Positions 24,801 through 30,800 of a stretch of DNA of 64,000 nucleotides are shown one piece after another. The notes below the pieces were generated by a model. The model was not told the DNA's origin, did no database searches, and saw only the letters and a program-made list of their open reading frames with translations. This DNA comes from Macrostomum lignano (lineage: Eukaryota), in the NCBI GenBank assembly GCA_002269645.1, contig NIVC01000729.1, positions 138,095 through 202,094 on the forward strand, read 5' to 3'. Position numbers and translations under genes: made by a program. Positions within the stretch are counted from its first letter, which is position 1. The number at the start of each line of letters is the position of its first letter.

Positions 24801-27800
24801 ACCAGCAGCAGAAAAAATCTATTAAAATTCTACTGTAAGTAGTTTAAAAGCACCATATTCTCTATTTTTAAACCCTCACTTCCAGGTGAAGCGGCACTAC
24901 ATCCGACAGTTTGCCGGCCAGCTCTACAAGGTGTTTCTCAGCATCGACCTGATTGGCAACCCGCTCAGCGTGATCGGCGGCCTCCGCTCCGGTGCTCAGG
25001 ACTTCTTCTATGAGCCCATTGCTGGCGCCATTCAGGTGCGCATGACACTCCGTTTAGCACCAATTCTGACACAATCAGTTTAGCGCCAATTCTGACACAC
25101 TCCGTTTAGCGCCAATTCTGACACTCAGTTTAGCGCCAATTCTGACACACTCAGTTTAGCGCCAATTCTGACACACTCAGTTTAGCGCCAATTCTGACAC
25201 ACTCAGTTTAGCGCCAATTCTGACACACTCAGTTTAGCGCCAATTCTGACACACTCAGTTTAGCGCCAATTCTGACACACTCAGTTTAGCGCCAATTCTG
25301 ACACACTCAGTTTAGCGCCAATTCTGACACACTCAGTTTAGCGCCAATTCTGACACACTCAGTTTAGCGCCAATTCTGACTTACTCAGTTTAGCGCCAAT
25401 TCTGACACACTCCGTTTAGCGCCAATTCTGACACACTCAGTTTAGCGCCGATTCTGACACACTCAGTTTAGCGCCGATTCTGACACACTCAGTTTAGCGC
25501 CAATTCTAACACACTCAGTTTAGCGCCAATTCTGACACAATCAGTTTAGCGCCAATTCTAACACACTCAGTTTAGCGCCAATTCTGACACAATCAGTTTA
25601 GCGCCAATTCAGACCATTAGTTTAGCGCCATTTGTATGAATTACTTTGTCAAATTTTGAAGCCAGAAAAAGCCTACCGATATGTATCGAAAAGCAACTTT
25701 TCTTCTTCACTACATTGCAGGGCCCTGAAGAATTCGTTGAAGGCGTGTACTCCGGCATGAAGTCATTTGTCGGCCACACAGTCGGCGGCGTGTCCGGTTT
25801 CCTGCAGCGAATGACCGGCACGGTCGGCCACCTGGCAGCCATCGCTTCGTTCGACTCGAAGTATCAGCGCCGCAGGGAGGCGCACATTCGAGCTCGGGCC
25901 AACTACGGCACCGGCAGCAACATGGCCAAGGCGGCGCAGAACCTCGGCTTGGGCTTCGTGCAGGGCATCTCCGGGATCGTCACCCAGCCGTACGAGGGCG
26001 GCAAGGAGGGCGGCGCTGTGGGCTTCTTCTCGGGTGAGTCTGGAATTTTGAGAGAGAGAGAGAGAGAGAGAGAGAGAGAGAGAGAGAGAGAGAGAGAGAG
26101 AGAGAGAGACAGAGAGAGAGAGAGAGAGAGAGAGAGAGAGAGAGAGAGAGAGAGAGAGAGAGAGAGAGAGAGAGAGAGAGAGAGAGAGAGAGAGAGAGAG
26201 AGAGAGAGAGAGAGAGAGAGAGAGAGAGAGAGAGAGAGAGAGAGAGAGAGAGAGAGAGAGAGAGAGAGAGAGAGAGAGAGAGAGAGAGAGAGAGAGAGAG
26301 AGAGAGAGAAGAGAGGTCACGGCGTGTTAAATGATTTAATTGAAAATAGGCTACCGGTTTAAAGACTCTGGGCTCTTCGTCAGGCCAAAAATCGTTAGGA
26401 TCGCTCTTCGTTAGGGCCACTGTACACTCCTCTAGCCGGTTGTGCGCCAGTGTGACGAATGGGGCTTAATTAAAGGGTAGGAATTAAGTGTACGTGACAG
26501 TCCTGGGTAGATATTAAATCGATGCTGTAGTGACAATTGATCACTAGATTAATAAGTAGACATAGGTGTTATAAAGGTAGACACGAAGGTCGATAAGTAT
26601 ACTTGGCGATACTTTGTATACTCATAAACTCATACATATACTAGAACTAAACAGGTTGACATGTGAGCTAATTTACTCCACACAAATTTGCCCTTACCTG
26701 TATTTAACTATCTTTCTGTATATCTTGCTGTCACCAATGCACGATATTACACATTGTACAGATCGCTCTATCAACAAACTGCACCCCCCTTACATTTTAC
26801 CCGCACCGACCACCCCCCCGCCCCCCTCTCAGTACAGTCGTTCGGGTGCACGAGTGTACGAGAGTTATGCGCTATTTTATTATCAACCTTAAATACTCGT
26901 ACAACCAACTGGGGGGTTGAAGGTCGAGGGTGATAGGGAGAGAGCGAGAGAGAGAAAGAGAGAGAGACAGTGGACGACGCTCTGCTATAAGACGCGACTC
27001 TGTTTATTGTAGCAAAGCTTTACACTATACTAAAGAAATAAATGCCAAAGTTAAAGGCCAGTCATATATTATACATATATTTCTACATTATCGAACGGCT
27101 CGGAGTTCATGTCGTCATCCTCCTCCGTCTGTCCGTTCGCTGCGCTGCTGTTTGTCTATCGGCACAGCGCCGTACGCAGCGAAGCGGACGATCTACGCGA
27201 CGCGATTTTGCTGTTCCATCCAGCTGAGACGGCGTTGGATACGCAGTGCCTTCTAGCTGGCCAGCTGATGGGTCTGACTGGTTTTGTTCGATCAACTCTG
27301 CTCACTCAGCCTGTAGCTTTTGAGCTGGACAGCCTGCGTGTTGCTTCAGTACATTGCGGTGATTTAACCCTGTGCGTTGCATCTCCCGGCATTGGCGGGG
27401 AGGCGACCATCTGCGAAGCTGCTCGCGGTCTGCACCGAGCCTTCCAGTTCTATTGCGGCCCGCTCGCTCTGGCGTTTCATTCAGCTTCGCGACACTCGCC
27501 AGAGCTTCAAGCCCGACTTGAATGGCTGTCTGGCCGGCTGCTTGAGTTGTTCTGTCCGACCGATTGTCCGCCAGCTCTGCTGCAAATGGCTTCCGGTCAC
27601 GTGACCGGATTCCCGCTCATGCCGACGCGGCAGCAGCAGCAGCAGCAGCAGAAGCAAGCCGGTCTACGTCGGAAGCGCGACTTTGCTCGACTCCTCCTAG
27701 CCGCTGACTGCCTCGCCGATCGCCTCATCAACTGTTGCAACTCCGACGTCGCATCGACATCAGCCTCCATCTTCGCTTTCCCCGCCTCCTCGCAGGCGTC

Positions 27801-30800
27801 ATCTCGCCGTCGGCAGGTGGTTCTTGGCTGCGCCATCTTCGTGTCCGGCCAGTTGTTGACCTCGGTGAACCTGCCAGCGTCGGTCTGTACCGCCTTGTCG
27901 ATTCTTGCCGATGCTGAACACGCCGCAACACTGCCCATGTCAGAGGCGATGTTTCGCATCGATCTGCAGCTCAAAGATGAAGACGACAAAGATCGGTCGA
28001 TTTTTGCGTTTCACTCCTTTGTCGCGTCCGATGAAGATTGGAACTCCCGCGCAGAGTTGGATGCGGACAGTGCTCAGAACGGCTGCTCAGGCCGCTGCGG
28101 TGGGCCTTTATTGGTGCCCCGGCTTACCAGCCTCTGTAGAGAGGCGCTGCTCGCTTATAGATTTCAAGAGATCATTAGCCTCGACCATTCTGGTGCGCCA
28201 GTTCGGCGCCTAAAATGCGTTGTGTGGCGCCGGCGCCAGAACGACATCTGCATTGTGGCGCTCGCCGCCGCCTCGGCCTGCCTCGGTTGCGTGCGCCGAG
28301 TAGCCGAGCCGCTCCTGTCACCGAGCCAGCTGCGACCCCTGACCGACGCTCTTGCCGCTGCTGACGCTGCAGAAGCCTCAACTTCTGCACCTGAGATTCA
28401 GCCTCCTGCACCTCCTACTCTGCTGCTCCGCTGTCCGCCGCTGCTCCTGACCGCCTCCTCAACCGACGTCGCTCGCCGATTTCCCTCCACCGATAGCGTC
28501 GAGTCCTCGGCAGCCGGCCTCGCCGTTGAGTTGACTTCGCCCAGCCTTGGCGGCGAATTTGCCGCCCTGTCGATTCGCGTCGACGGTCGGCTTTGCGTCT
28601 CCGCTGCCCGCTCGGCTGGAATGCTCAGCGTCTCCGACAATGTCGACTTGACCGTCCCGGACGGCAGTCCCGCGGCGGCCGCTGCCGTCTCTTTCTTTGA
28701 CGAATCTGCCGCTGTCTCAGCAGCTTCAGTGGCTGGTCAACGAAGACTTCTGGGCGCGTCGATCGCTGCCACGCCGACGACGCTTCTGCCGAGATTTGCG
28801 CACCTTGGCGCCGCGGGCGTCAGCAGCGGGCTCAACATGCTGCAGGTGCCGAGCAAGCCGCGACGCACACGCAGCCTCATCGGCGGTTGGCGACCGTCCT
28901 CGCGCGGTTTTTGACCTCTATTTGAGCCCGCATGACCGCCATGTGACCTCTGTTGGATGATATGCTTTGGAATTCTATCAAGCCCCTATGATCTTCATTT
29001 GGTCCTATTGTGACCTCTATTTGTCCCCAAGCTTTGACGAGTCTAGTTAGCCCTTGTAACTTTGTTAGTCATTATTTGATTATTCTTCTTGATATTCTAT
29101 AGCGCTGTACACATGCCGAAAACAATATTTACTCTTCTGAACTGACTACATGTTCATAATGACCAAGTTCGACATAAGATGTTCTTTAGTGATTTTTCTG
29201 CCGCATTTCTTGTTGAAACTCTGGTGCAAAAATATAACTATTTAAGCATTACTGGTGCAAGTTTGACATGTTTCTTTCTTGCAGTGTTTTATTTAGCCTT
29301 CAAGGGACTAAAATCCAAATGCACACTGCAGTGTCTAAAATTAACTATTTGATTTCAGAGTGTGTAGGTGACAAAAGGCGTGTTTACTAAAGCAAAAAGC
29401 TACCTCAGATTCAAATACGAACCTACCTGCCAGTATATACGTCGTATATCTAATCTATAACCTACCTAACCCTAACCTACCCAACCCTAACCTACCAACC
29501 CTAACCTACCCAACCCCAAACTACCCGACCCTAACCTACCCAACCCTAACCTACCAACCCTAACCTACCCAACCCCAAACTACCCGACCCTAACCTACCC
29601 AACCCTAACCTACCAACCCTAACCTACCCAACCCCAAACTACCCGACCCTAACCTACCCAACCCCAAACTACCCGACCCTAACCTACCCAACCCTAACCT
29701 ACCCAACCCTAACCTACCCATCCCCTATCTACCCAACTCCAACATATCTAATCTACCCAATCCAGCCTACCCATTCTACCCAACCCCAGCCTTCTAAACT
29801 TCAACCTACCCAACCCCAGCCTAATAAACTCCAACCTACCCAATCTACCAAACGCCATCCTACCCAATCTACCAAATGCCAACCTACCCAATCTACCAAA
29901 CTCCAACCTACCCAGTCTACCAAACGCCAACCTACCCAGTCTACCAAACGCCAACCTACCCAATCTACCAAACGCCAACCTACCCAATCTAACAAACGCC
30001 AACCTACCCAGTCTACCAAACGCCAACCTACCCAATCTACCAAAACGCCAACCTACCCAATCTATCAAACGCCAACCTACCCAATCTACCAAACTCCAAC
30101 CTACCCAATCTACCAAACGCCAACCTACCCAATCTACCAAAACGCCAACCTACCCAATCTATCAAACGCCAACCTACCCAATCTACCAAACTCCAACCTA
30201 CCCAATCTATCAAACGCCAACCTACCCAATCTACCAAACGCCAACCTACCCAATCTACCCAACCCCAACCTACCCAACTCAGATCCTACCAAACCTGACC
30301 CTACCCTAAACATTCAACATACAATATTTTTTTCTAACTTGAACCAATTCAACTTCGAGCCATCAGTACACACGCAACCCAACAACCCTTCTCAACTCCC
30401 TAACACCCCTCAGGCGTAGGCAAAGGTCTGGTCGGCGTAGTCAGCCGCCCAGTTGGCGCGGTCGTGGACTTCGCCAGCGACACATTCTACACTGTTCAGC
30501 GCGTGGCCGACCTGTCCGAGGTGCCAAGGCGTGTCCGAGATCCGCGCTACATCCGGCCGGACAGTCGCTTGGTGTACTACCGCCGAATGGAGGCGGCCGG
30601 GTACACCATTCTGCAGCAGGCCGTCAAGCCCATTCCCAAGGAGGTCTACTGCCTGCACTGCCTGGTCAACGATCCCAAGTCGCGTGCCCCCGTTGCGGCT
30701 CTGGTCACCAACTTCCGTATCCTGTTGGCCCGCCGGGCCGACCTGCTGGCCACCTGGTCGTGCGACCAGCAATTCACCTGGAACCAAGTGGACGACGTGC

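Follow-up and report, generated by a model that had tools for sequence, protein, structure and literature searches.

A 64,000-nt window of the Macrostomum lignano genome (assembly Mlig_3_7, GCA_002269645.1, contig NIVC01000729.1; contig coordinate = window coordinate + 138,094) carries a complete, intronless gene for an HPS4-like protein inside a single intron of a VPS13 gene, in the same orientation as its host. The 601-residue product is, by its domain and fold matches, an HPS4 ortholog, and purifying selection acts on the open reading frame (ORF) throughout. With moderate confidence, we favor the account in which the sole HPS4 of this flatworm was retroposed into an ancient VPS13 intron, where it would produce its own, possibly spliced-leader (SL) trans-spliced, mRNA from intronic signals, the insert being spliced out of the host transcript. 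A first-pass annotation, made from the DNA letters alone, had proposed instead that the two genes may be co-transcribed as a small endolysosomal unit, and the evidence for each view is weighed below. Coordinates refer to the window and to its forward strand unless stated otherwise.

A complete gene within a VPS13 intron

The host intron (26034–30413; 4,380 nt, phase 1) has a GTGAGT donor and a CAG acceptor. The exon upstream (25721–26033), whose homologs carry the names VPS13A/C or Vps13-like in a homology search, is of the A/C type and ends ...TTC TCG G|gtgagt, one base into a Gly codon. The exon downstream (30414–30922) starts cag|GC GTA GGC, ends in phase 0, and belongs to the VPS13_C region, which Pfam matches at 8.9e-17. 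Translation of the two exons joined restores a conserved VPS13 motif across the phase-1 junction. The VPS13 of M. lignano itself was not among the proteins that the homology search retrieved. The last VPS13 coding exon (31588–31674) follows the acceptor aatttcag|AAA, and the annotated coding sequence (CDS) ends with TAA at 31674.

Within this intron, the HPS4-like CDS occupies 27109–28914 (601 codons plus stop). It begins 1,075 nt downstream of the host donor and ends 1,499 nt upstream of the host acceptor, which makes it a nested gene; it lies 2.76 kb before the VPS13 stop codon, behind more than 3,300 host codons. No in-frame ATG precedes the one at 27109 in the stop-free stretch, which begins at 27055; the context of this start is weak, with T at −3. 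The first-pass annotation had described a complete same-strand ORF of 601 residues between these two exons, and the exons, the junction, and the ORF all check. The annotation of GCA_002269645.1 likewise treats the CDS as a separate gene, placed inside, but separate from, a 3,541-residue VPS13 gene. The same layout, a gene of 600 or 601 residues inside a 3,541-residue VPS13, is found on three assembly contigs (L001, which is the window, L002, and L003), and in each of them VPS13 is followed by a 220-residue ankyrin (Ank) gene. The corresponding 90% protein cluster also holds M. lignano PAA87782.1 (Mlig029008g1) and PAA79652.1 (Mlig029008g2). The possibility that the insert is an assembly artefact is thus not borne out, as three separate contigs share the nested layout. 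The nested gene is real, sense, and complete within one VPS13 intron.

The three genomic copies were compared to determine how the ORF evolves. Pairwise dS (synonymous divergence) is ≈ 0.032 and dN (non-synonymous divergence) is ≈ 0.005–0.010, giving dN/dS values of 0.17–0.31, with similar ratios in all three thirds of the ORF (N-terminal, middle, and C-terminal). When the changes were placed on a star tree of the three copies, 15 were non-synonymous and 22 synonymous, where 73% non-synonymous would be expected under neutrality (binomial P = 3e-5). The 1.8-kb ORF contains a single indel, of exactly 3 nt, compared with 10 indels, mostly not multiples of three, in ~1.25 kb of flanking intron. 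Purifying selection thus spans the whole nested ORF, which marks it as a live gene. Transcript support is implied by the GenBank annotation, which rests exclusively on RNA-seq transcript models (from StringTie/TACO and a de novo transcriptome, with TBONE cutting and TransDecoder ORFs). Among Logan and other contigs, none bears any of the three HPS4-like proteins beyond the genome contigs themselves, and the literature searched contains no mention of Mlig029008, HPS4, or VPS13 for M. lignano.

The nested protein is an HPS4 ortholog

HPS4 is the CCZ1-like subunit of BLOC-3, an exchange factor for Rab32/38. The initial reading of the ORF as HPS4-like was sustained by a profile search, in which residues 14–115 matched Pfam Intu_longin_1 (PF19031; the first longin domain of INTU, CCZ1, and HPS4) at 37.2 bits (E 3.9e-9; cut-off 23.7 bits), and both the Protein Data Bank (PDB) and fold comparisons favor HPS4. 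An exhaustive phmmer search of 1.84 billion protein representatives returned 38 relatives, every match being confined to residues ~5–130. Source names were looked up for 20 of the 38; those with functional names are HPS4, 'HPS4-like', or 'melanosome assembly' proteins (from Glandiceps, Asterias, coral, gar, platypus, frog, peccary, scallop, and Priapulus), and the others are generic, e.g., 'uncharacterized protein'. Searched to E ≤ 10, the PDB sequences gave one match only, the HPS4 chain in the cryo-EM structure of BLOC-3 (8zwc_B, E 2.2e-8), and hhalign against 19 HPS4-like proteins recovered longin-1 at 99% probability (E 4.9e-18). The AlphaFold 2 model is confident for residues 10–148 only, with a predicted local distance difference test (pLDDT) of 82–89 and the ββαβββα fold of a longin domain. 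Foldseek placed 8zwc_B first (1.5e-12), about five orders of magnitude ahead of the Inturned (2.4e-7) and CCZ1 (7.3e-7) chains. Pfam, hhalign, the PDB match, AlphaFold 2, and Foldseek together locate the first longin domain at 27136–27552 (residues 10–148).

Among the tri-longin Rab exchange factors (human HPS1–HPS4, PDB 8ZWC; CCZ1–MON1; Inturned–Fuzzy), the nested protein therefore shares the sequence and fold of longin-1, with HPS4 as the best branch. Its homologs have the HPS4 architecture, with longin-1 at the extreme N-terminus, a long linker, a C-terminal longin-3, and no PDZ domain; the nested protein, too, has its longin at the extreme N-terminus and no PDZ, as in HPS4 and unlike Inturned.

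The remainder of the protein speaks less clearly for this assignment. At 601 residues it is shorter than the best invertebrate matches (780–1,100), and pLDDT falls below 50 beyond residue 148, leaving only the first longin domain secure. Longin-2 is hinted at by a 23-residue stretch (27793–27861; residues 229–251) that is collinear with the HPS4 longin-2 start motif Q..QRrPGVLAGCILYKNkVLCT and matches it at a weak pairwise hhalign E of 0.036. This pairing recurs in the MAFFT alignment and in the non-significant second domain of the comparison with 8zwc_B. For the third longin domain (PF19033), there was no Pfam match at E ≤ 1 and no hhalign match; the domain is present at E ≤ 0.01 in eight of the ten best homologs scanned, mostly below the Pfam gathering cut-off. 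The longin-3 region of the nested protein may be too diverged for detection, with the C-terminal third still constrained. A BLOC-3 function is therefore an assumption for the protein. We conclude from the domain and fold comparisons that the nested ORF encodes an HPS4 ortholog with a strongly diverged C-terminal half, in which longin-1 is the secure part.

The phmmer matches contained no second M. lignano relative, and, within the annotated proteome of this species, the nested ORF is apparently the sole HPS4. No flatworm relative was found among the looked-up phmmer matches, the nearest relative being 37% identical over longin-1, and a further profile search returned one sea-cucumber protein only. 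A match seen only in Logan (P0035) was considered as a flatworm relative and rejected as a vertebrate-type transcript.

An intronless gene in an ancient intron

The host intron is older than its occupant. In oyster, the VPS13-like gene is interrupted at this very Gly codon, likewise in phase 1 (FFK G|gtaatg ... cag|GG ATC GGT, encoding …G|IGKGLVG), and this counterpart is ~460 nt long with no gene inside. On this comparison, the phase-1 host intron is ancestral, unrelated to the nested gene, and was colonized later; creation of the intron by the HPS4 insertion itself is ruled out, given that the intron is already present in oyster.

Vertebrate HPS4 genes have introns. In Lineus, HPS4 has 12 coding exon blocks (11 introns), 8 within the region collinear with the first 270 M. 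lignano residues, and the HPS4-like gene of Lingula spans 6.7 kb for a 3.3-kb CDS. The M. lignano gene differs from both in being intronless and nested; when compared with Lineus, Lingula, and oyster, it has no introns and a new location, as a retrogene does. The surrounding VPS13 retains many introns, one of them shared with oyster, which makes the intron loss specific to the HPS4 gene. Because complete intron loss combined with relocation is the signature of retroposition, we prefer this origin, and HPS4 was most likely retroposed into the host intron. An HPS4 mRNA would have been inserted, in the sense orientation, into a phase-1 intron already present toward the 3′ end of a VPS13 gene of the A/C type, with later loss of the intron-bearing HPS4 from which it came.

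The same intron has received another insertion in one of the three copies. On L003 (~5730–9000), an extra ~3.5 kb lies in the 5′ part of the host intron, with an insertion point at about window position 26320. It contains a 582-residue antisense ORF with RVT_1 (E 5.8e-6) and GIY-YIG (E 0.0033) matches and has the look of a Penelope-like retroelement. On this evidence, the intron tolerates retro-insertions.

Expression of the nested gene and co-transcription with VPS13

We infer the promoter, 5′ end, trans-splicing status, and poly(A) site of the nested gene from its flanks, which weighs against the expression part of our account, as does the small divergence of the three copies (2–4%), which makes conservation of the flanks uninformative. 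In the preferred account, the nested mRNA would arise from signals in the ~1 kb upstream, namely a TATA-like element and one strong acceptor-like site, and would be polyadenylated near 29250 through a variant signal that follows the stop by ~320 nt, VPS13 splicing out the entire insert. The TATA-like element, TATAAG (26986–26991), was read from the sequence 118 nt upstream of the ATG and is a candidate core promoter; it is identical in all three copies, but nearly the whole flank is too. Of the acceptor-like sites preceding the ORF, the strongest (26812–26832) consists of a C/T tract and CAG, with its AG at 26831–26832, 276 nt before the ATG; the 5′ end of the nested mRNA may be processed here. 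Downstream, AATATA (29231–29236, +317 after the stop), a one-base variant of the poly(A) hexamer followed by a T/GT-rich stretch, is a reasonable candidate for the poly(A) signal, and the same position reads as canonical AATAAA in L003.

The alternative that survives best, although we regard it as unlikely, is that HPS4 has no promoter of its own and is transcribed within the VPS13 pre-mRNA, from which it would be released by SL trans-splicing together with intronic cleavage and polyadenylation, forming an operon-like unit. Both genes are on the same strand, and in M. lignano 30–39% of genes are SL-trans-spliced and ~7% of transcriptional units are polycistronic (PMC8629364, PMC5730564). These processes being common, release from the host pre-mRNA is biologically available, a point that counts against an independent transcript. 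The strong acceptor-like site at 26831–26832 could serve such a release, the downstream Ank gene is apparently annotated as SL-trans-spliced and perhaps in an operon with VPS13, and the lack of a canonical AATAAA in the window copy would limit premature termination of the host. The same acceptor also provides an argument against the proposal. Under the outron rule, an acceptor with an upstream cis donor is expected to be cis-spliced rather than trans-spliced (PMC8629364), and the host donor at 26034 lies upstream of this one; cis-splicing from that donor to 26832 would reach a stop after ~31 codons and truncate VPS13. The published acceptor motif that accompanies the M. lignano spliced leader, [T/C]TNCAG (PMC8629364, PMC5730564), is absent from the 1,075 nt between host donor and ATG (26034–27108), although with the motif at 44% of sites, over half of real sites lack it. 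In addition, more than 3,300 host codons precede the nested gene, each use of it would abort a host transcript, and published operon criteria describe tandem genes, whereas this gene sits within an intron of the upstream one. Splicing of the leader at the AG at 27104–27105, which would supply an in-frame ATG, was also considered and rejected, on the merely suggestive ground that the annotated protein starts at its own Met, whereas the annotated CDS of Ank begins directly behind an acceptor of this type.

Two of the arguments that had pointed to co-transcription concern the poly(A) signal and the intron phase, and neither holds. It is correct that AATAAA and ATTAAA are absent from the first 550 nt after the HPS4 stop; the earliest AATAAA comes at 29823 (+909), within a tandem repeat. 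Given the local composition, however, only 0.67 such sites would be expected by chance in 550 nt. The neighboring genes behave alike, with the first AATAAA/ATTAAA of VPS13 at +442 and none within 1 kb of the Ank gene, which has AATATA at +228. Together with the variant hexamer at +317, these values leave nothing remarkable in the missing signal. As for phase, the empty oyster intron, which matches in codon and phase, shows the phase-1 state to be ancestral and hence no argument for a link to the host. The accompanying statement that this is the only non-phase-0 intron of 19 was confirmed in part. The intron is in phase 1, and its neighbors checked by hand (23513–23819, 24324–24885, 25036–25720, and 30923–31587) are in phase 0, as are most of the high-scoring exons farther upstream, but one upstream junction is ambiguous, fitting either phase 1 (11497|13320) or phase 0 (11478|13367), and Pfam and PDB comparison favored neither model. 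An ad hoc chaining of the exons went astray on coding-like tandem repeats, and its output shifted with the parameters. Across VPS13 (~10100–31674), at least eight of nine confidently placed introns are in phase 0, the sole exception being the ancient phase-1 host intron. Such an excess is unusual for an animal gene, and the phases of the oyster ortholog are mixed.

The proposed endolysosomal co-expression unit fares no better. No HPS4–VPS13 linkage was found in Lineus, Lingula, or oyster, and the HPS4-like genes of Lineus and Lingula sit among kinase, ferredoxin-type, Pol-delta-4, and Pelota genes rather than near VPS13; a conserved unit of this kind is thereby contradicted. In the literature searched, nothing was found linking HPS4 with VPS13 beyond reviews that name both. 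The shared endolysosomal role of the two genes is most likely a coincidence.

A variant of co-transcription, which we consider quite improbable, treats the VPS13 pre-mRNA as the HPS4 precursor and lets SL trans-splicing and a weak intronic poly(A) signal compete with host splicing, such that each transcript yields one product or the other.

Weighing the origin of the nested gene

Several observations tell against retroposition itself. The 3′ flank contains no poly(A) remnant. No convincing target-site duplication was found either, the only flanking direct repeat being an exact core of 8 nt, which is at chance level. Such hallmarks decay with age, making their absence weak evidence against the proposal. 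No intron-bearing parent was identified among the 1.84 billion protein representatives, whole-genome DNA not having been searched. This result is compatible with loss of the parent copy; since no parent is seen, gradual intron loss followed by translocation is an alternative.

We give little credence to the DNA-level alternative, in which HPS4 lost its introns singly under lineage-wide intron loss and arrived by transposition or rearrangement of DNA. The missing poly(A) remnant and target-site duplication fit it, the neighboring Ank gene is likewise single-exon, and M. lignano genes average ~4.9 introns. It would require, however, that at least 11 ancestral introns had all gone from HPS4 while the host kept many, one of them ancient, and it must set aside intron loss with relocation as the classic pattern of retroposition, whose other marks fade over time. 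We accordingly retain retroposition as the preferred origin.

A false VPS13–HPS4 fusion

The first-pass annotation had also raised a VPS13–HPS4 chimera as formally possible. The acceptor AG at 27060–27061 does open 15 stop-free codons in frame with the nested ORF, so an in-frame join is formally available; the tract before this acceptor is purine-rich, and the sole fusion model on record is an artefact. That model, UniProt A0A1I8IXA4 (P0004; 1,174 residues), is an older 'VPS13_C domain-containing protein', compared here with window 23260–30922, in which the ORF is threaded in frame into VPS13. It employs a GTACGA donor, a cggAG acceptor, a GTTTTT donor 5 nt before the stop, and an 8-nt 'intron', and it uses the 26832 acceptor for a mini-exon at 26833–26855. 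The 8-nt pseudo-intron (~23833–23840) replaces a clean phase-0 intron, CAG|GTGAGA…CAG|GTG. The fusion would also place 600 residues into the conserved VPS13 motif GFF(S/K)G|[IV]GKGLVG. Because its splice elements are so weak, the 8-nt 'intron' and the GTTTTT donor among them, we regard A0A1I8IXA4 as an ab initio artefact and a false fusion. The model falls in the same 90% cluster as the genuine HPS4-like proteins, and annotations transferred from it could be misleading.

That the ORF is not independent at all, being either a decaying retrocopy covered by retained-intron reads or a segment translated only as a VPS13–HPS4 chimera or as cassette exons, is highly improbable: the automated fusion model, the in-frame join from 27060–27061, and the weak start context with T at −3 are what it has in its favor, and it is opposed by purifying selection across an ORF with a single in-frame indel, by the standing of this ORF as the only HPS4 in the annotated proteome, by a fusion that needs a GTTTTT donor, a cggAG acceptor, and an 8-nt 'intron' and mis-splices a GTGAGA/CAG phase-0 intron, by the implausibility of a 600-residue insert in the conserved motif, and by the later RNA-seq-based annotation, which splits the two genes.

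Comparison with known arrangements

The closest arrangement is mouse H13/Mcts2, an intronic retrogene whose transcription forces intronic polyadenylation of its host (PMC13309782). Both cases involve an intronless, presumably retroposed gene in the intron of an unrelated host, with potential for transcriptional interference. They differ in that Mcts2 has a surviving parent, Mcts1, and is under the control of imprinted CpG-island methylation, whereas for the flatworm gene no parent is seen and the organism uses SL trans-splicing.

A precedent for the co-transcription proposal is the cholinergic locus. There, VAChT/unc-17 is nested on the same strand in the first intron of ChAT/cha-1, and VAChT is intronless in mammals. 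The two genes share a promoter and a 5′ exon, act in the same pathway, and have kept this arrangement from nematodes to mammals. The likeness is superficial: the HPS4-bearing intron is near the 3′ end of its host, there is no evident shared exon, and Lineus, Lingula, and oyster lack the linkage.

In the SL operons of M. lignano and nematodes, genes are arranged in tandem, with the acceptor typically ~100 nt after the upstream poly(A) site when repeats are subtracted (PMC8629364, PMC5730564). The nested gene shares the same-strand orientation with these operons and differs from them by its intronic position, its upstream cis donor, and its lack of YTNCAG.

Neighborhood of the nested gene

The host intron is rich in repeats on either side of the ORF. 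A (GA)133 microsatellite (26050–26315) starts 17 nt into the intron and, by Tandem Repeats Finder (TRF) and the three-copy alignment, is much shorter in the other two copies. Tandem arrays of 15/59-nt and 24/97-nt units (29458–30306; TRF) fill the 3′ third, with copy numbers that vary among the three copies. Other VPS13 introns are packed with repeats as well (25045–25630 and 31056–31427), including a 26-nt unit present 22.7 times and a TCTCC array, again with differing copy numbers. Further upstream, long arrays at 4400–5140, 7500–8670, 9450–10090, 10630–11010, 12700–13240, and 19230–21680 are stop-free in two to three frames for hundreds of codons (CLSV..., SLSP..., TDRQ..., PTLK..., and GWVSMAREV... 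units). Simple gene finders would take them for coding sequence, and ORF-based scans would likewise be misled.

The Ank gene (220 residues; 33217–33879) lies on the same strand, 1.5 kb past the VPS13 stop (gap 31675–33216). Its annotated CDS opens with AAG rather than ATG, directly behind catacAG| at 33215–33216. Such a start is compatible with SL trans-splicing, in which the ATG at the end of the M. lignano spliced leader would initiate translation. Judging from this arrangement, VPS13 and Ank may form an SL operon.

At the host donor, L003 (5380–5400, equivalent to window 26020–26040) reads TTCTCG|GTGAGT at the VPS13 exon end, one G short of TTCTCGG|GTGAGT in the window. Canonical splicing would then shift the frame of the next exon (TCG GCG TAG), yet the annotated product has 3,541 residues. 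The missing G reflects either a PacBio homopolymer error or a damaged VPS13 copy. An intronic segment at 23615–23690 (…GGTCGGGAATCGAACCCCCGACCTTCCAGTTTTGAGTCCGACGCTCTAGAATCG…) resembles a fragment of a tRNA-derived short interspersed element, with a T-arm-like sequence; ARAGORN detected no tRNA in the window. No known RNA genes and no SL-RNA gene were found in the window.

Conclusions

Together, these findings describe a fairly ordinary nested intronic retrogene that is also an HPS4 ortholog, already present in GenBank as a 'hypothetical protein'; the proposed co-expression unit with VPS13 is unsupported, and co-transcription of the two genes is unlikely. It offers a clean case of a sole-copy, probably retroposed gene lying in sense within an ancient host intron. 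The analysis provides a better name (HPS4/BLOC-3) for three M. lignano 'hypothetical proteins' and flags A0A1I8IXA4 as a false VPS13–HPS4 fusion. Should the nested mRNA prove to be processed from the host pre-mRNA, SL-operon logic would extend to introns, and such an 'intron-embedded operon' would couple two endolysosomal genes, their ratio set by splicing choice. M. lignano is among the few flatworms with transgenesis, which makes the promoter question directly testable. In this regenerating flatworm, the HPS4 assignment serves as a handle on lysosome-related organelles, such as those of eye pigment and possibly the rhabdites.

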